DNA from: Bigelowiella natans CCMP2755 | Lineage: Eukaryota > Protista > Cercozoa | Reading direction: 5' to 3' | Length of the DNA: 64,000 nucleotides | NCBI GenBank assembly: GCA_000320545.1 | Contig: ADNK01002961.1 | Coordinates: 9,262 to 73,261 of the forward strand | Part shown: positions 43,061 to 55,444 of the stretch, piece after piece | Numbering within the stretch: the stretch's first letter is position 1 | How the letters are laid out: each line of letters starts with the position of its first letter | The notes under the pieces: model-generated | What the model was told of the DNA's origin: nothing | The model's database searches: none | Seen by the model: only the letters and a program-made list of their open reading frames with translations | Translations under genes and position numbers: made by a program

Positions 43061-44170
43061 ATGGCACGTAAAGCCTCGGAGAGCAGATGCGTGTGGCATT
43101 CTGGTGTTCTCACTGCAGTCATTGTAGCTGTTCTCGCCATCACTGGGGGAGCCGTAGGGGAATCTTTAGCCAACGTGCCCGTTCCTCGAAAAGGAAAGCT
43201 AATCTCAATGCGAAAATATGCTATTGATGTTGACCGATTACTCCTCTCGCGTGATCACTGGCCAGATGTTGATGAAAATGTGCACGTAGCAGCCTCGAAA
43301 CTCGCAGCCACTTTCATCTCCTCCAAACTCGACGCAACCTTGGCGGCGTTCCTCGAGGCGTCAGCTGCTGCAACTGCTAGTAGGTGGGGGCAGGTCGTAG
43401 CATACGCCAAGCAGCATGCATTCTGGTCGTTGCAGCGATACCTCGGATGGAGTTGGACTGACGCATCTGCTTTCATGGAAATGGCGAAGCTTCATGTTGC
43501 GTCAGAGGAGCAATTGCGACGATTATTACTTGGACATGAGATCGCAGCCGGAAGTGTCGAAGCAAATCCCGTAAGGTTGCTAGACATTGGTGCTGGCGCA
43601 GGGTTAGTCACAGATTCCCTCGCAGCTTCGTTAAATATAACCGATAGGACAAATGTCGTATGTGTTGAAAACTCAGGCGCTTTGAGGACAATTCTTAAAA
43701 AAAGAGGCTATAAAGTGGTTGCCCCTGACGAGTTTTATGGCGGCAGATTATCGTCGGAAAAGTTCGCTGCAGTTGCGCTTTTGAATCTCCTCGATCGTTG
43801 CGATGAGCCTGTTGCGCTCCTGAACAAAGCTCTAGGCATGCTGGCACCAGGAGGGCTATTGTTCATAGCAACGGTGCTGCCATTCAATGCGATCGTTCAT
43901 GAGGGGCAGTTAGGTTCGAAGTGGGGGAAGTCATCCTGGCGTCTGCCTCGCTCGCCGATTACTTTCAGAAGTATACTTATTAGATCGAAAAAAAGCGCAT
44001 TTGAAATCAAATTAGCGATCTTCTTGGAGGCCATTCACCGGCACCACCCACATCTGGATTTAATGAGCTGGACTAGACTTCCATATGTATCGTCAGGGGA
44101 TACCGTGAGAACACATTTTGCCCTTGACTCCGCGCTAATGGTATTTCGCCAGCCGTACTCTGACTGGTGA
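43061..44170 (+). CDS. METTL9: METTL9/DREV-family protein-histidine N-methyltransferase, intronless, with N-terminal signal/anchor
   Basis: LLDIGAGAGLVT, LLNLLDRCDEPVALL, VLPF and WTRLPYVSSGD...FALDSALMVF match the METTL9 pattern as I recall it (LLDLGAGDGEVT, LNLLDRCDQP, WTRLPYLCEGD...YVLDDAVFVL). Confidence 0.85.
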   Translation: MARKASESRCVWHSGVLTAVIVAVLAITGGAVGESLANVPVPRKGKLISMRKYAIDVDRLLLSRDHWPDVDENVHVAASKLAATFISSKLDATLAAFLEASAAATASRWGQVVAYAKQHAFWSLQRYLGWSWTDASAFMEMAKLHVASEEQLRRLLLGHEIAAGSVEANPVRLLDIGAGAGLVTDSLAASLNITDRTNVVCVENSGALRTILKKRGYKVVAPDEFYGGRLSSEKFAAVALLNLLDRCDEPVALLNKALGMLAPGGLLFIATVLPFNAIVHEGQLGSKWGKSSWRLPRSPITFRSILIRSKKSAFEIKLAIFLEAIHRHHPHLDLMSWTRLPYVSSGDTVRTHFALDSALMVFRQPYSDW

Positions 44171-45199
44171 ATCTAAGAGACATTTTGATATTTCTTTTGT
44201 AAGCTTGCTGCGCCTGTCAGAAACTGCAGCAGCTGAAACGATTAAATCTTTGACGCTCGTGCTGCATGCTCTAAAAACATGCGAAACTTTTATAACGGCA
44301 ACTCCATCGATCTACTTAACGATTCATCACATAGATACGAACACAATGTTTTCGTCATTAGATCAATGGTTACAACACCATGCAATATCACAATGAGAGA
44401 CTAGCTAGCTAGCACACTTTCACGCAGCTCTAGAGCTTTGCTTGTAGAATGTAGGCTAGCTAGCTAGCTTTTATTGTGATGTAATGTCAATCTAGCAATG
44501 TCTGCTAGTCTAGTAGTCTAGCTAGAATTACAACAACACTAGAAACACAGCGAAGTGCCAACAGCCACTAATTAGCTAGATGAAGCCGTGAAATGCACAC
44601 CTAGCAAGTAAGTTCTAGAGCTTGCTAGACATCTGTTATGCCTAGATGCAGAGCTAGTGAGCTAGTGGAGATGCTAGTGGTTTTCAGGTTTGTGCGCGCC
44701 AACATACGACTAAATGAATGTTCTCAATTCTAGACTGCAATTTTGCCCTACACCATTGATCGTGATGAATCGCTCAGCATTTGCATGCATGTAGCAACAC
44801 ATCAATGACGTGATAGCTAGGTTAGCTTTTGCAACAAATGAGGCACAGCTTAGGCTTGCTATCGGGAGATAAAAAAAAAAACAAATTAAAAATCAACTAA
44901 TTCAAATTGGTCTCGCATCCTCTTTGGAAGAGAGACATGTCAACATTGACATAGAGAGTTTTCTGTTCATTGTTCTTCTCATTTTAGTTGTGAGTTAACC
45001 CAAAACTCAGAATGGATACTAGATGTTGTCTTCGCTCTGACGAAAAAAAAACAAGGTTTCAATTTTGAAATAATGTGCCATGACAATGTGTATCCAGCAC
45101 GTCTAGATGTGAAGTACAAGCACGGTTAACAACTGTGTACCAAAGCTTCATCCACAGTTGATCTACAACCATAACACATTCGAATGTGTCCTACTCTTG

Positions 45200-47866
45200 G
45201 GCGGCCTATTTGTAAATAGGTAACTTATGTGGACTCATAGGAAAGAACTTTTATGATATATCTGCATTAAGTAAATCGATTTTGTAACTCCTATATTTCA
45301 TTCCACACCACTGATTGGCATGAGATCCGATCCGACTTTTAATGTGCAGTTGTTACAAAATATTCCTATATACATTTGTACTAATAGCAGAAATTACAAC
45401 ATAGAAGTTGATCAATTTGATACTTACGTCCACATATTCGACAGTGATGCCTCCGAAAGAATAGTGAGAACGTTCTTAGACAAATCTTAGGTATTCATCA
45501 AAGTTATTTTTAAAATATAATACCAGTGATCTAGATTACATGGCACTCAAGAACGTGATCATTCTTTTCCCAGTGCATCCTAGTCTGTGCAAGCTTTGTA
45601 AATAGCTTCCTCAGGTCTTCTAGCTGAAATTAAGTTCATTGTAATTGATAACGATTATAGAACGGAAAATATATATTTGTCTAACCTGCAGTGACTTTTG
45701 CATTGGCGTGACTCTAATATCCAACTCGTTGCGATGCCCGATTTCTATTCTATTGATCAATCTTTTCTCACTGGACTTTTTCCTAAGAGCAAACAGCCAA
45801 AAACATATATAATAATGTGTACAGATAATTATGTTTTACTTATTATCAAACCGTTCATCATCAAGGCTCCTAAGTTGCAGTTTGCTTGATTTGAGATTTG
45901 TAGGTGCAGAGACCACACTATGAATTTTTATATAGTTTTTTGCTTAAAATTAATTATATATTTATTCATTATGAACTATCATACTAAACCTGGTTGAATC
46001 CTGTCCTACTTTGCATACTTTTTGTTCTGATTCATTCAGAGTCGATCTCGGCATTGTCTTATTTTCCATATCGGGTGAGGCGGAAGTTCTTAACTATTTA
46101 ATGTAGACTAATTAATACCTTGAAAAGACAACTTTAGCCATATATAATTACATCGACGTTCAAAAGATTATGGATAATGAAGTTTTGTTTCTTTCATAGC
46201 GTATATTCTTTCTTTGCAAATACATATATGAATTTTGCATACCGCCAGGTGTTGAAGATCCCTAACCTAAACATGAGAGTAAAATAAATGATTGTAAACA
46301 AGATATTAAAATAGTAGCTTAGAAAATCATAACCGTCATTCTACTTCTTCGCGACATGCTCAATTCGCTGCAAGATAATTTCAAAGATCAGATTTTCCCT
46401 AAGATTTAAATATTAACTTACTGGGGAATAGGTTGGCTCTCCCGTGATCTTGACGGCGACTCTGGTCTTATACTATTATTTCTGCCCCCATTAGGTTAGG
46501 GAATGGATATTCTATACAGGCTTCGTTTAAACTAGGTTACCTTTCATGACGAATGTAGTAATCCAGTGGAAGAATAACAGATTCGCTTACACTTTCTCTA
46601 ACAGGCACCGTTCTGAATAGTTACACTTAAATGTAATATGCAACTCTTATTAACTTATTGATGAAGTTATGTTTGTAGACTCTTAAAAATATGAAAAATG
46701 ATATTGGGTTGATACTTATCGATGTGTTCAGGAATCACTGTCGGAATTTTTGCATGGGGAAGCTGTTTATGGCACAGATGACTTAGCTCTTTCTTAAATG
46801 AAATTCAAGTTTAAATGTATACCTGAGCATCGGATGACACTCGCGCTGGTTCAACTGAAAACTTGCTATGCTCATAGTCTATAGTAACCAAAACATTAGC
46901 TTTCACATAAGGAAAATTATGGTTCATATGTGGCGCTCCACCGTTTTCATAAGCATAATTTTCAGCATCATCGCTTTCACTACTCCTTGCCAATGAAACA
47001 GACTGTAACGGTAATACTGCATTAACCGAAAGAAATTTGAGTTTATGATGTATAATACCGTCTCCATTGTTTGAGCAGAAAAAAATCCATGCTTTTTCAC
47101 CCTAATCACAACGCTGTTATGCATATGTTTTAACTGTACAAAATCCTTACTTGAAGAGATCTTTAATATTTTTGCTTTTATGCTGATGATGCTTTGACTT
47201 GCTAGAACTACTAAATCTATTAAAGCTCGCCAGCATCTCAGCTCTTAGTGGAACCTCCCCACGTATCTTTTGTAATTCCTCCCTTTAATTAAAGTATTCA
47301 AAAGCAATTAAAACCCACATGGATAATACTGATAATCTAATAATACTTATTTTACCAGAGGCGCGTAGCTTCATTAATAGCATTTTGAGCTATTCTTTTC
47401 ATTTCCTTTCGTCATTGGTCCAGCATATTATAAAACTTCATACAACAAGTTATAAGAGAGTTCTGAGTACCAGATAATCCGACTTTGCAACAAGCTCGGC
47501 ATTAAGGGATCCCGATGCACTGCATGATCTTAACATCTTACGATTTTTCCCTCGCATGCTTTAGAACATATAATTTAGCATCGGTAAAATCAAACTCATA
47601 TGCCTCAGATAATCATTTTACCTGCACCGATGACAATACACATGACCACATGTTTTACAACATGTTCCTTCTCTGCCGTTTGTGATTGCCGTGTAGCAGG
47701 AAGAACAACGGTCAGGCGTACTCATTAATAGAGGCGGTATTACTTTGGAAACTGTTAGAATACAATGGTGCATACCTCATGCGCATATCAAAACCTACAA
47801 GCAAATCTCTTCGTTACCATTCCGTTTTTCCTCTCTTGCCCCGTAGCGTAGACCGTTGGACTCCAT
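45200..47866 (-). CDS. Hypothetical protein with many short exons and an N-terminal Cys cluster
   Basis: Regular ~50-nt GT-AG introns. Exons read MESNG|FDMRM|..., CCKTCGHVYCHRC, EMKRIAQNAINEATRL|WEELQKIRGE. 3' end not resolved. Confidence 0.5.
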
Positions 47867-48297
47867 ACGCGTGTTTTGTTCATCCAATTGTAGGTCGATT
47901 ATGATGCGCGACACACAAAAAGCATACCAAATCAACTTGCTTTCGCTCCCGAAATCGACGCGAAAAAATAAAAAAGGGGAGGGCGACAAGGAATGCTGGG
48001 AAAAAACACGACGAACGTTTTGCTGTTGGAGTTCATCGGAATCGTGCCTCGAGAGTAAAGTAAAATCAGTGCGCAAACAGTTTCGCGACAGCGACAGAAT
48101 GCACGTTTTGGGGATTAATCGCCTCCGTTCTTACATTCTCAATACAACAATGGCGCTTATGCAGGTTTTTTTGTTTGTTGCATGGTGGAATGTCCTGTGG
48201 AGTATAGACAGGAATAGCTTAGGCATTGTGCTTTCGTACTGTTTGTTGTAAGCGGATGCTGGGTTTCTGGATTAGATAATGTTTTTCCTTGAATAAA

Positions 48298-49867
48298 ATG
48301 AGACCGTTAATGTCTATCTATAAGGCCAGGGCTGACTTCGCGTTCAAAGATGATGATGTAAAATTACCCTAATTCTTTATTGGAACAATATATTTAGATT
48401 AACTCTAAATTGTTAGGATCAAGATGGCATTCTCGAAATGCAGATTGGAGACATCATCACAGTAATTTTACATTTTTTTGATTTTCTACTTTTCGACTTA
48501 ACCCGCTTTCTACATATGTGCAGATTATCGAAGAGGGCGATGAAGGAGGTTCATGATTTCTAACCCTTCAACTCCTTCGTGACAAGCAATAATGTGCGCT
48601 GTTCTGATAGGATGGTGGAGAGGAAAGTTAAATGGAGTAGAAGGTAAGCTTTCGTACAACTATACAATGCAATCTCAGTTATGTGTTATGTGTATATTAG
48701 GATTTTTCCCCATCACCTACTGCACCATTCTAAGGGGTATTTAAAATAACAGTAGCATTAACCAAATTTGTGTTGGCATACTATGTTCTCAATATCCAAA
48801 TAATCAAAAACTATATATCAGATGAGGAAGTGGTATCACGCGAACGAGTTGAGGTACTGAATCGATTGGGCAGTTTAAAGTCAGTCACTTTAATCATTTC
48901 ACATACTCATTGGTTATCGCCAGAGTACTTCTATAGCTGCTGTATCGATCGTATCTCCAAGAGATGCATCCGGATTGGGCTCTTTTGGTGAAAGCTCAAG
49001 AGGTATTTATTTTGTCGACTCTTTGTAGGTTGAACTCCAAACATAAACAAAAGATCCTACCATCCCAGACATTAAAAGTTCTCTGCTCGCCAAAGAAAGG
49101 TAGTTATGCATTTATATTATCAACTATATCTGAAAAACGTTTTCATTTTATAACCACAGGAAGGATGGGCCACCTCCTTTGCCTGCTTTCCATAAACATA
49201 AAATCTCGGTCGGTGAATAAATAAAAGGGATTCCATATTAAGTTGTGCCGTGAACAAAATATTATTCCGGCATCGTTGAGATATACTTACATTCAAGTCT
49301 TTTAATTACATATTCAATTTGCATTCATAAGGTCTTGACTGATATGAGCTCGTTGATATCCCGCTCAAGAGCTAACTCAAGAAACTTGGAGATCAAAAAG
49401 TGATCATCTTGCAAATATATCAGTTCACATGTGATAGATCACGCTTTTCCATATGATTTGTTATGATTCTCAGCAAGCCTGCAGTTTACAGTACAAGGAG
49501 GTAATCATTAACTTTTACTTCAATGAAAATGACCATTAGTCTATAAGAATTGATGATCATACTCCAGCGCATCCAATAGCCAAACACGCATGTATGGAGG
49601 AGGTCCGAAGACCAAAAAGTAACATCGTATTAATGAGTTGCAATAGAAACTACAAATGTTTAAGAGATACTTCACTAGGATGGGAATCTTAGGCCTCGAT
49701 ACAAGAGTCAAAGTTCCGACTCAATTCAACGTTTGGGGTTTGAAATATAAAATCACTGAATAAAACCTAAATTTCTGAATAAAGTGTAAGCCATGCTTTA
49801 AGGGTTACGTTTATCACATTAGCAAAAAATATGGCGATTATCAGTTCACTATATTGCATTATTCTCG

Positions 49868-49906
<39 letters not shown>

Positions 49907-52900
49907 TATAACTGTACAATATCGTTAATAAGTACATGTTAATCTTATAGATTTTGTGCGCTAATATGGGGAGGTGTCGAAGAAAGGTTTGCCTGTTGGT
50001 TTTGCAATTAAGCACACCTGAAAACTCGTATTTCAATTGCAGATTTGGCCTTACTTATGGCATTGTGGGATCGTACACAATCATGCTTGGTTCTGCAATC
50101 AAATTATGATAATGATTTATGAGTCTTTCATTAGTTTGATGCGATTTTTCTGGCAGGAGTATATATTTATCTTTTCGAGAAGGTACTGTTTACGACACGC
50201 AGCCCAAGGTAGCATCCACATAATTTCAGTTGAACAAGCGTAAAATATATTCTTCAGTGCTATACCTTACCGAGGGCTAATGTATTTTATCGTTGGATTT
50301 CCACTATTCATCGCTTATCCAACAATAATAGCTGGGGTAATCTTTGAAACCATTTTTGTCTCAAAAAATATAATCGTTACACGTCTTAGGTTTGTGTATA
50401 CATTACTGGATTTGTTCAATGTGTATCTGCATTCTATGAAGAATCGGTGCAAACTTAACATACACGGTAATTTTGTGTGAAGATAGTGAATAAATGCGTA
50501 TGCTAGGTAAAGCCAAAGAAACGGAAGACAATGGCTAAAGCTGCTCCAGTAAAACCTACTGGCGACGCAACAGATTCTAAATCCCGTAAATATACAAATC
50601 TAACGGTTGTATTCGCTTATTTTGACTTTTTGTTTTTTGGCGGTAAGCTGTTACAGCTAGTAAGATGAAAATACTTGCCAGTAATGGAGGAGTGGATCTT
50701 GTGGAACAAGATAGTAGCACTTGGTGTGAGGTTCTATTCACAAATTATGTTCTATATGTATTGAATTTAAAAGTTAAATTAACTTAAAGAGCTTGAAAGC
50801 ATGGTTAATTTACTTGCAAAATACGAACAAACTTGGAACTAAGGTTATTACGCTTTCATGCTGCATAAGAATGTTATCGAGTACGTGACTGGAAATACCA
50901 CCATTTACTTCTTAGTTGTTTATTCTTACCTACATCATCGGGAATATCATAATCTTCATCTTTGCTGTAAGATAATTTAGATGCTTTTGGATTGTTCTGA
51001 GTGGTCGTTTTAATTTCGTCAGTTACAACTTTGGTTCATGATCAATGACGAACTTGACGTAACAGAATCAAATAGAACCAAATCCTTTGTAAACAATACC
51101 TACATGTAATGTATGAAAAATAAACTAACACCAGGAAGAAGATAGGATTAGTGGGGCTGGACCTTTTGCAAAGGGGTACCTTTTTTGACGGTTCCAACCT
51201 ACATTCGTTAAAATCTTGAATGGTAGGTTTGGATGGACACTAGACTTCAACTGCGCGATGATTCTTGTAATCCGTTGAGAAATATAAATATATAAATGCG
51301 ATGTTAGCTTGGAAATGATGGAACTTGTTTTTAACTTTAAGGTTCCAGTGTGCCGGAATCTCTTGTCCATTATTTACGATTTTTCCAACTCAGGGGTTGT
51401 CTGATTCAATAATACATATCACAAATGTGCTAAGCAATATTTTCCAATAATTGTAGTATTGCCTCGGAAAATGCTTGGCTCCTATCGTAAACTTAAAACC
51501 TGCCAATGTTTTGAGCCTGTGGAAGTTCAATGTTATACTTCAGGTGACATTCATTCCTGTGGATAAAAACATTGCTTTCCATAAATTCATCGCTTATATT
51601 ATGGCAGGGTAACTCATTAAGTTTATAAGTTCTATGCTGTTTAAGAATTGATATTGATTTATATTTTATTACCATGAATAGGTGTGCCGCTGGACATATG
51701 TTTTTCCATTTTGTAAGATCTGATGGTAAAATTTCGTTAAATGAAGCTAAGAGTTTCTTAAATTCAGATAAACTACATTTTGAGACCGGACCAGACAATA
51801 AGTCTTTTCGGGGTTGCATTTACAATTTCATATCTCATTAGGAATTTAAACATTATCTGACTTTACTTAAGATTGTACCATGGTATACCGGAGGACTTAT
51901 TGTTGTGTGCATCTTTGTCATATTTTCTGGAGGGCAAAGTATGTGAATTGGCCAAAATTATTTTGGTTAAAAGGAATAAGATTTTAAATATGCTTAGGAA
52001 AGGTTCGGAGGAAACAGTTCGAAATATTTTGGTAAAATTGGTAAAGTTCTATTCGATCTCCCCTTAAATACAATAATACAGGTACACACACATATTTGTA
52101 TTTCCTCTTTTCTTCATTCTACTTCTGATTCATGGAAAAGGAGGTATTCCAAATACATCTGCATCGAGGCAATTGCTGTGTAATTTGATGCATTATTTAA
52201 ACTAGGATGGAATCCGAATTTCTGGAAGTGGTACGGTATTCCAGTGAAACTCAGTTTACTTTGATTTACTTTGATGATAATATATAAGGTTCATAGTACC
52301 TGCTGTAATGTATGCAGCTGAGCGTATTGTAACTATTCGAAGAACACGGAAACCGGTTGTTCCTCCTTAATCAAGTTTTGTTGACAACTTGTTTTAATTT
52401 TTAGTCTAAGATTTATTTATCTAAAATATAGGTTACGTTACTGTCAGTGACATCAATGAAGCCAAATGTATTTTCGTTGGAGATTGAAAAGGTGTATCTC
52501 TGGTTTAATACGTGTATTTCACTTATTCTAGTTTTATATTTTAAGTCTGGTCCGTTCGAAATGAAAACAAATGGCCGGGAACCTTACTTTGAAGGTATCA
52601 GAGTTGTTAGTTGCGGCAATGAAATTATATTATTTTGGTCATTGCGAAGGTCAATACTGTTTTATCAATTGCCCGCATTTGTCCCAGTTCCAGTGGCATC
52701 CCTTCACGTAATCCTATTTCATGTGTGCACTGATTTGATTCTGATGCAGATTGCTTTTCTTTTAGCATTTCATCTGCTCCCTCCGACAAAACTATTACAT
52801 TCCATATTCGTAAATCGATTCCAGGGTAAAATTAACCATGAGAATAATAAGTGAAATGATTATTTTACGTAATTAATTTTGCAGATCATGGACTGATGAG

Positions 52901-54477
52901 CTTCATGAGTATGTTGCAAACGGGATTGAATACTGACTTAACATTTAAAACAAGTAAATATATTTCACAGCTATCTTCTATCTCTTGGAAACTCTAAGAG
53001 CGGAAGAGTAACATTCTCAAGGAATAATGGAGCACAAAGGGTAATAATATTTCGGTTAGGTTTAGTCATTATCATGTGTTATCTTCTATTGGTTATGAAG
53101 GTTTCTGGCAAAATCATTGGTCCAGACGGATTGCCCCTGCTTAAAATTGATGGCCCGCATTCAGCCCCGACCCAGCACATATCGAAATATAAGAATGTCA
53201 TGGTGATTGGAGCAGGTATTTTTTCTTTTTATCGGTTAATGAATAGCATATATACTTAATTCGTTTATAGGTATAGGAGTCACTCCGGTTGCTTCCGCTT
53301 CCAAAAGTGTGGTGTGTAAGTTTGGACAACATTTTATTCTTGCGTCATTTAATTCAGAGTCTTAATCAGGTTTTCCATAAGTGGCGTACTGCAGTGGGAG
53401 AAGTATTCCCAAATAATGGTCGCTTCATTTTCAGTAATATGCTTTCGCTACTTAAAGTTTTTTTTTAAATTATTCGTTAGGCTATTTCTACTGGGTTGTG
53501 AGCCACAGAGATGTGGATTCGTTCAGATGGTAGTATTCATCTGAATGAAAAATGCCAGTTACTGAAATTCTTAAATGTGTATAGGTTAATTCGTTTGATA
53601 AAAGATTGTCAAGATGAAGTAGATTTCAATTATCAATGTGGTCTTCAAAAATACATGAATCAAATTAACGATAGGTCAGCCATCAGAGATCAAAGGCGGC
53701 TTCAGTTTATGTAAGCATTTTATTAAGAAAAGGTTTTTTGCTCATCGCCATTTGTTCTAATATCTTAGCAACACAAGTTCGAATTCCATATATTCGTAAC
53801 CTCGGCAAAAAATCCAAAGCCAGTCAAGTTGCACATTGCCAAAGAGGATGTATGGATATATTCATATAAACTCTTAGGCAACAAATTAAGTATAATCTGC
53901 CTATAGGAATTATCTTTCTGGGGGGCTAGAACAGAGGAAGGGGGTATTGCAAAGGCTAAAGGACCCTTTGATGAGTCGACACTATATTCTGCTCTTAAGT
54001 GTCCTATTTTTGGAGAGGTGTCCAGATTCTTAGTATATAAAATTTCTGATTGACATGTAGACCGATGTAGGTGAAACAACTTGGTAATGTTTACGTCCAC
54101 AATGGTCGGCCGAATTGGAGGGCTGAATTTGCTCGTGTAAAGGTATCATTTGAACTTATGTTCACTTTTAAGCTTCTTTAATATCCTTATATCGCTTCAG
54201 GCATACCATCCTGAAAGCACAGTTGGCGTGGCATTCTGCGGAAACGAGCACATTGCGAAAGATTTGAAGCGGTAGTGCTATCTATCAATTTTATTGAAAT
54301 CAAATTATAAAGAGCGTTTAGTTGTTTTGAACTGTTCCAAAAGTATGTCAAACACCATGGCATCATTAGTTATAAAATATCCAGAAATAATTATCTTCCT
54401 TTCTTTGCAGACAATCGGCCGCTTTTAGTAATGTGGAACAGAACAGCTTGTTTAGACTCCACCTTGAAAACTTCTAA
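48298..54477 (+). CDS. NADPH oxidase (gp91phox/NOX2-like) with N-terminal SH3 and p22phox-like domains, dozens of short exons
   Basis: SH3: YKARADF...LEMQIGDIIT|IIEEGDEG|GWWRGKLNGVE|GFFPITYC. NOX: FNCAMIL|VPVCRNLL, DKNIAFHK, GHMFFH, FW|YTH, IHG, QWHPFT|ISSAP, DGPHSAP, IGAG|IGVTP, YFYWV, GRPNW, FCG, HLENF*. Confidence 0.9.
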
Positions 54478-55444
54478 GTCACATATCAGATGATGCAGTT
54501 TCATTCCTACGTTTATTATGTTGTGATCATCATAAATTAGTTCGCATTATCAAGTTTTTCAACCAATTACAATTTGCGCATTGGTGTCACCTCTTTCACC
54601 TTTCATTTCGGTCAGTACAACATGCAAGCTGTCATCATGATGTGTCACAACATCGACGTGTCAGCGTAATGCACAGAATGATTCGAATCATCACAACATG
54701 CCAAATCAAATGATTGGAACCCCTGTGTGTCAAACTCATCTGCGCAAGCAAGTGAGCGCCAACGCGCGCAGTCGTTGATTGCATCGGTGCAATGCTGTGT
54801 GCATGTCACTTTTGCCATGCTAGCTTGTCACAGCGACTTGTGCAACCTAGCTAGCCCCCGCCACTAGCCCATCTCGTTGAATGTTGCAATACAAAAATGA
54901 GAGTAATTTTGGTACCTTCCAATTTGCTATAGCAAGCTAGTTTGCATTGGAGTGAAGCGCTGCACACAGCTCTAGAGTGCCGCTTCTTTGCTAGTTTGGC
55001 TTCGCTTGTTCGTTCTAGCGCTTGCGATGCGGCTGCATGTATGCTAGCATGCCACATTGCATCCTTCTAGTTAGCTAGGCTAGTAGGCTTGTTAATGCTA
55101 GCTTGGCTAGCTTGCTCTAACAAGAGCTAGTGGGTCTAGCGGATGTCAGAATTGGAGGGGAAGTGCTAGAAGAGGCAAGCTAGCAAAGGATGGACTAGTG
55201 CAGGGGCATGAGAACCAGGCTAATCGGTGTGAGAAACTGAGGAGTACGATGAGGATGATGAGGGAGGAAGAGGAGTGACGGCACTAGGGCACACACATCA
55301 AGACATGCAAGTGCCAACACCATGCTAGCTAGCGGTTGTGAGTCATGTCTAGATGTGGTTGCTAGGGGTAACGTGCCGCCAGTCTAGTGGGGGGGGGGGC
55401 GTGGAGGCGGTGGAGAGAATGGCTGCGTTTTAGTGGGGGGGGCA

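Follow-up and report, generated by a model that had tools for sequence, protein, structure and literature searches.

A p22phox-like four-helix module joined to an NADPH oxidase in a single gene of Bigelowiella natans

The stretch of DNA analysed here, from the chlorarachniophyte alga Bigelowiella natans CCMP2755 (Rhizaria), comprises 64,000 nucleotides of a eukaryotic assembly of 91.4 Mb (contig ADNK01002961.1, positions 9,262 to 73,261 of the forward strand), and is referred to below as the window, with positions counted from its first letter. On its plus strand, at 48150-54477, lies a single gene for an NADPH oxidase (NOX) that begins with additional domains, among them a small membrane module resembling p22phox (CYBA), which partners NOX1-4 in the membrane as a bundle of four helices. 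The gene is divided into approximately 55 exons of 24-115 nt, separated by introns of 49-160 nt, nearly all of which measure 49-85 nt (Table 1). It encodes, in order, an SH3 domain, a disordered linker with a PxxP motif, the p22-like bundle, a basic linker, and a six-helix, two-heme NOX domain followed by domains for flavin adenine dinucleotide (FAD) and NADPH. The module had first been proposed from the letters of the DNA alone (hereafter the original prediction). In the present work, databases were queried with the single exon 53101-53214, with the proteins of orthologs and with transcript loci, while the joined translation of the window served only for a local check of the frame and for scoring against the family profile.

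The seven exons of the module all have AG/GT borders and are separated by introns of 49-85 nt. Their local translation gives a peptide, QFNVW to AFYEES, that is identical to the one in the original prediction, confirming the chain of short spliced exons proposed there. Each exon is colinear in tblastn, at 60-70% identity, with P0002, an 859-amino-acid (aa) NCBI gene-model protein of the chlorarachniophyte Amorphochlora amoebiformis and the nearest named ortholog. The same comparison recovers the SH3, PPPLP, module and NOX exons of the window in order, and pairs the proline-rich motif GPPPLP in the linker exon 49160 to ~49208 with GPPALP of P0002. Against the family profile, which contains this close ortholog, the spliced window module scores 131 bits.

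The gene is expressed, as RNA runs X1 and X3 both yield spliced contigs from it; 15 of 51 joints are listed, all GT..AG and most of them in the NOX part. Within the module, exon 50258-50336 sits in the middle of a 138-nt contig (X1 record 1) with spliced sequence on both sides, and is therefore spliced at both ends. Exon 7, which ends at 50446, is joined in frame to 50507 by X3 record 14 and by an X3 loose end at 50448 that reads the letters of 50509-50523. For the remaining five junctions of the module, the evidence is orthology together with splice signals. Module exons 2 and 3 are separated by an intron (49869-49950) made up mostly of a (TA)n microsatellite of ~40 nt, and 49860-49916 was skipped as a repeat in read mapping.

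Between the module and the NOX part the spliced frame contains no stop. This bears on whether the two might be separate genes or proteins in vivo, with a second start inside the chain, at the Met in exon 50507-50585, giving a stand-alone NOX and a stand-alone SH3-p22-like protein that associate in trans. Open reading frame (ORF) P0129 from MMETSP (628 aa, nearly identical to the window, spanning 34 exons from 50507 to the TAA stop codon at 54475-54477 with five mismatches) does begin at this internal Met, after the module, and a NOX-only isoform or a partial transcript is therefore possible. Some pieces in X3 are moreover unspliced (records 12, 13 and 18), meaning that the RNA data are a mixture. 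We nevertheless consider separate proteins very improbable, given the in-frame X3 joint and the stop-free frame just described, the continuous ORFs of P0002, of a second ortholog, P0143, and of more than 25 other cluster representatives, and a paralog in which no intron lies between module and NOX.

That paralog is one of two further SH3, p22-like and NOX genes in the same genome, which lie head to head on contig C1058 and have one or two introns each. In the minus-strand copy, helices 2-4 of the module and the whole NOX occupy one uninterrupted 695-aa ORF (L014:1599-3686(-)); the exon immediately upstream encodes the SH3 domain and helix 1. The covalent fusion in the B. natans genome is therefore shown without any splice prediction. 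The plus-strand copy has a frame change near L014:8156-8240, which may be a small intron. Intron density is sharply unlike between the paralogs, with ~55 exons in the window gene against the one or two introns on C1058.

The fused arrangement is not confined to this genome. When exon 53101-53214 was searched against 1.84 billion representatives, it matched P0001, a partial MMETSP ORF, at 100% and P0002 at 89%, as well as many proteins of 750-1100 aa. P0002 starts with an SH3 domain, continues through a disordered linker that contains GPPALP and the four-helix module, and ends, after a basic linker, in a complete NOX. P0143, from a different chlorarachniophyte, is a complete transcript ORF of 998 aa and is laid out in this way too. 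In at least 25 representatives of clusters at 50% identity, a NOX follows directly after the module (alignment A1); members of the family are 30-39% identical to one another. The order of SH3, proline-rich linker, module and NOX also occurs in Cercozoa sp. M6MM and Paulinella micropora (Rhizaria) and in Mucochytrium quahogii and Cafeteria (stramenopiles). SH3 domains were recognised in 13-15 of 25 members (Pfam SH3_1, SH3_2 or SH3_9), PxxP-type motifs precede the module in about half, and EF-hand families matched none of the 25. In P0002, residues 5-56 score 43-44 bits for SH3, above the Pfam cut-off, and the SH3 exons of the window are colinear with them. In most members of A1, helix 4 of the module leads directly into E-x-[YFW]-x-P-x-x-[KR] and then into basic residues; this short motif resembles human p22phox 129-EQWTPIEPKPRER and could be a juxtamembrane element conserved in the family.

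The catalytic part has the hallmarks of a NOX. The product of the window contains two His pairs in transmembrane helices (TM) 3 and 5 (encoded by exons 51544-51608 with 51682-51712, and by exon 52082-52143), the FAD motif HPFT (exon 52650-52707), the NADPH motif G.GIG.TP and a C-terminal aromatic residue. In A1, H436/H450/H507/H521, H565-P566-T568 and G658-I659-G660-T662 are invariant, and the family conserves HPFT and GAGIGVTP. The spacing is 14 in both His pairs, compared with 14 and 13 in NOX2 (positions from PMC3591440). The best matches of the NOX part in the PDB are NOX2 chains, both by sequence (E 5e-95) and by Foldseek (E 6e-23), and PF01794, PF08022 and PF08030 are above their cut-offs in the orthologs. 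In the model of full-length P0002 the catalytic part is likewise closest to NOX2, and the module has predicted local distance difference test (pLDDT) scores of ~90-97.

The module itself is related in sequence to p22phox. A full-length profile of 25 members matched human p22phox in the PDB (8gz3_A and 7u8g_B) with E=1e-9 and 40.7 bits, aligning profile positions 123-245 with chain residues 3-137, that is, with the whole membrane part; elsewhere, its C-terminal part matched NOX2, NOX5 and DUOX and its N-terminal part matched SH3 domains. A profile restricted to the module (A2, built from six modules from transcript loci) found only p22phox chains among 177,635 PDB sequences (E 6.3e-6 and 2.1e-5), the next match having E 3.5. 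The alignment of A2 with p22phox is colinear, placing WA.N on W9-A10-N11, G.Y on G39/Y41, E..G.R on E53/G57/K58-R59, R....Y.LLS.P on R90/H94/S98/P100, and a terminal E on E129. Glu53, Arg90 and Glu129 are all present in the module and vary little or not at all across the family, while Tyr takes the place of His94 in 90% or more of the 25 members. We take E53 and R90 of p22phox to be sites mutated in chronic granulomatous disease. Identity between module and human p22phox is 18-24%.

These results bear out the original prediction, which had aligned the peptide with human p22phox by eye: the colinear alignment holds over residues 3-137 at the profile level, the module-only alignment retains the key Glu and Arg and has Tyr in place of His94, and the proline-rich tail of p22phox is, as had been proposed, replaced by a linker running into TM1 of NOX. 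This linker is basic, cytosolic and ~60-70 residues long.

Structural comparison, which the original prediction had suggested as a check, also places p22phox first. A template-free AlphaFold2 model of one module alone consists of four helices (pLDDT 81). Its top three Foldseek matches are p22phox chains (E 1.4e-3, probability 1.00, TM-score 0.70-0.72), followed by a match with E 0.49 and a TM-score of 0.45. VIA-align against 48,161 chains again ranked p22phox first, with Z 12.2 and a root mean square deviation of 2.6 Å over 109 residues at 23% identity; the runners-up reached Z 10.2 at 3-4% identity, a modest margin over generic bundles.

Several observations weigh against identifying the module with p22phox. 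Four-helix bundles attain middling Z-scores with many unrelated chains, and the tool itself warns that Z below ~13 can be generic; since helical bundles reach such values easily, the structural match counts only together with the sequence match. No single member attained the gathering score of PF05038, the best reaching 17.1 bits (E 0.004) against 25; even so, more module sequences matched PF05038 than any other Pfam family (3 of 6 and 3 of 25, E 0.004-0.04). A six-frame search of the genome with PF05038 gave no match in the window and only two low-complexity poly-Pro/RE matches elsewhere (L001 and L002), a result that is uninformative because the exons are so short. A single-sequence phmmer search of the PDB with the paralog's partial module did not return p22phox, and the canonical C-terminal proline-rich region of p22phox is absent.

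Taken at face value, single sequences under the Pfam cut-off would fit a different account, in which a protist NOX has merely gained additional, generic membrane helices, as plant and protist ferric reductases have, and the module's likeness to p22phox is convergent or compositional. Extra N-terminal helices are indeed present in ppFRE proteins (Zhang 2013, PMC3591440), the modules give weak matches to Sdh_cyt, TMD0_ABC, Cg6151-P and COPI_assoc (E 0.02-1), and generic helical bundles reach Z 8-10. A generic extension is nonetheless difficult to reconcile with a colinear match to p22phox over its full length at a profile E of 1e-9, when no other membrane protein among the PDB sequences searched did better than E 3.5. 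Two structure methods put p22phox first, at 18-24% identity against 3-8% for other bundles, and the conserved positions of the family coincide with human E53, R90 and E129. We judge this account quite improbable. The seven exons thus very probably encode a divergent homolog of p22phox, covalently joined to a canonical NADPH oxidase at the N-terminus of the latter, which has no EF-hands; we call the homolog a divergent relative because its match lies below the PF05038 cut-off.

Table 1. Features of the fused NOX gene in the window and of its paralogs on contig C1058.
Feature	Position	Strand	Evidence
Exon 1 with start codon (MALMQ)	48150-48164	+	X1 RNA contig loose end at 48323 reads letters of 48147-48164
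Intron 1	48165-48324	+	GT..AG; exon 1 spliced to 48325
SH3 domain, five exons	48325-48357, 48417-48461, 48524-48548, 48611-48643, 48701-48736	+	Unbroken SH3-like translation; P0002 residues 2-59 colinear in tblastn
Cytosolic linker exons	48822-48853, 48924-49002, 49069-49099, 49160 to ~49208	+	RNA joints 49002/49069 and 49099/49160 in X1 and X3
Further linker exons	49209-49678	+	Several frame-preserving GT..AG paths link the PPPLP exon to the module; X1 coverage
p22phox-like four-helix module, seven exons	49679-50446 (49679-49737, 49823-49868, 49951-49986, 50043-50089, 50157-50208, 50258-50336, 50390-50446)	+	Splice borders, tblastn, local translation; homology from the module of the family
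Basic cytosolic linker, module helix 4 to NOX TM1	50507-50585, 50648-50730	+	X3 loose end 50448; X1 joint 50585/50648; P0129 mapping
NOX ferric-reductase membrane domain, 15 short exons	50790-52355	+	P0129 mapping; eleven RNA joints; PF01794 in orthologs
FAD-binding domain exons	52432-53040	+	PF08022 six-frame match at 52634-52708; P0129 mapping
Intron kept in some transcripts	52909-52970 (62 nt, GTATGT..CACAG)	+	X1 contig, MMETSP ORF P0127
NADPH-binding domain exons	53101-54477	+	P0129 mapping; exon 53101-53214 matches P0001 and P0002; PF08030 in orthologs
Paralog copy on C1058	L014:1599-4189	-	
Paralog copy on C1058	L014:7638-9382 and beyond	+	

One intron of the FAD domain is retained in part of the RNA. 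An X1 contig is continuous over 52884-53039 and P0127 ends within intron 52909-52970, whereas P0129 has it spliced out. Retention introduces a premature stop and truncates the protein after the GSWTDELH motif of the FAD domain; it may be regulated, or may reflect merely unprocessed RNA. The apparent in-frame stops in 52884-53040 had suggested a variant genetic code, which was rejected, since the retained intron accounts for them.

From 44000 to 54500, over the NOX gene and the neighbour upstream of it, G+C content is 35-38%, compared with 45-52% elsewhere in the window. The neighbour is an apparent multi-exon gene on the minus strand at 46500-47900, within the low-GC stretch. Past the NOX stop codon, at 54780-55200, lies a stretch rich in GCTAGC and other CTAG-containing words.

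The closest known counterpart of the fused protein is human flavocytochrome b558, the complex of p22phox and NOX2 (PDB 8GZ3, 7U8G and 8KEI). As in the module described here, its p22 subunit is a four-helix bundle with WA.N, G.Y, E..G.R, R...x.LLS.P and a terminal E, and NOX2, like the NOX part here, is a six-helix, two-heme protein without EF-hands; an SH3/proline-rich logic is common to both systems. Human p22phox and NOX2 differ from the fused protein in being two subunits rather than one polypeptide. Between its helices 2 and 3, human p22phox is longer by ~28 residues than the module, whose loop is much shorter there, and it has His94 where the module has Tyr. Its proline-rich tail is C-terminal, while the fused proteins carry an N-terminal SH3 domain, often with PxxP, before the module.

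Among microbes, fungal NoxD/Pro41 with NoxA and Dictyostelium CybA with NoxA/B are also divergent p22phox homologs that partner calcium-independent NOX enzymes; compared by description only, they are products of separate genes in Amorphea, in contrast to the fused proteins. To our knowledge, fungal NoxD also lacks the C-terminal proline-rich tail of the animal type. A NOX of Naegleria gruberi resembles the present family as a calcium-independent protist NOX that contains an SH3 domain, but there the SH3 is inserted in the C-terminal NADPH-binding domain, instead of at the N-terminus, and no p22-like module is described (PMC3591440). NOX5, Rboh and DUOX likewise unite regulator and catalytic core in one chain, although their fused regulators are EF-hands (with a peroxidase-like domain in addition in DUOX), whereas here it is a membrane partner. 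In the literature searched for p22phox in Rhizaria, stramenopiles or Bigelowiella, or in fused form, no description of an SH3-p22-NOX architecture was found, with most subscription journals outside the coverage.

In p22phox both termini face the cytosol, as does the N-terminus of NOX, and a fusion of the two is therefore topologically possible. By analogy with the human complex, the bundle would pack on the NOX membrane domain in cis, stabilising the heme-bearing core and supporting heme loading as p22phox does in trans, and the enzyme would pass electrons from NADPH via FAD and two hemes to O2. The cytosolic, proline-rich C-terminal part of p22phox docks the SH3 domains of p47phox and NOXO1. 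In the fused protein, the SH3/proline-rich pair could take the place of this docking between the p22phox tail and the p47phox SH3 domains, serving as a latch within the molecule or as a place where partners dock. With SH3 and PxxP elements of its own, the fused protein suggests a less elaborate version of the p47phox-p22phox docking switch.

The significance of the module depends on how it came to be in this lineage. The original prediction had noted that it would bear on the age of the p22-NOX partnership if the genome were non-amorphean, and the nearest named ortholog, from the chlorarachniophyte Amorphochlora, indicates that this is the case; the very short exons agree with this, and transcripts of the gene are present in the MMETSP and JGI collections. 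One recent survey holds that p22phox, p47phox and p67phox are restricted to opisthokonts, where calcium-independent, partner-dependent NOX enzymes arose (Massari et al. 2022, PMC9421330); an earlier study traced p22phox only to choanoflagellates and regarded the Dictyostelium homolog as uncertain (Kawahara & Lambeth 2007, PMC2121648). With one module (L003:486-899) as query for homologous proteins there was no match, the six-module alignment returned only two fragments of fused genes, and region 157-285 of P0002 returned only P0002 and P0143; none of the three yielded a stand-alone p22-like protein or a bridge to CYBA sequences.

A true p22phox homolog could also have reached protists of the SAR group (stramenopiles, alveolates and Rhizaria) by horizontal transfer from an amorphean, in which event the module would be silent on an ancient origin of the p22-NOX partnership. 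The known distribution is patchy, with Rhizaria and two stramenopile groups among the named members, and no stand-alone p22phox was found in the B. natans genome. Identity to human p22phox, however, is only 18-24%, and the fused layout is not known from amorpheans in the literature searched. Any transfer would moreover be old, because the family is deep, its members being 30-39% identical. We regard transfer as unlikely. If the module is instead a vertically inherited homolog of p22phox, the p22phox-NOX partnership and its SH3/proline-rich handle would not be an opisthokont or amorphean invention and would go back at least to the ancestor that Amorphea and SAR share; the single chain could then be ancestral, and the separate p22phox a product of fission. 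We put this forward tentatively, as a possibility that falls short of being probable.

That Rhizaria and stramenopiles have a p22phox relative, outside animals, fungi and amoebae and fused to a NOX without EF-hands, alters the opisthokont-only picture of this system, and the age of the p22-NOX partnership is now open to test by phylogeny. The fused protein is a natural single-chain cytochrome b558, in which the 1:1 stoichiometry is fixed and co-expression is unneeded. Such a single chain could aid structural and biochemical work on how p22phox supports the maturation of NOX enzymes.

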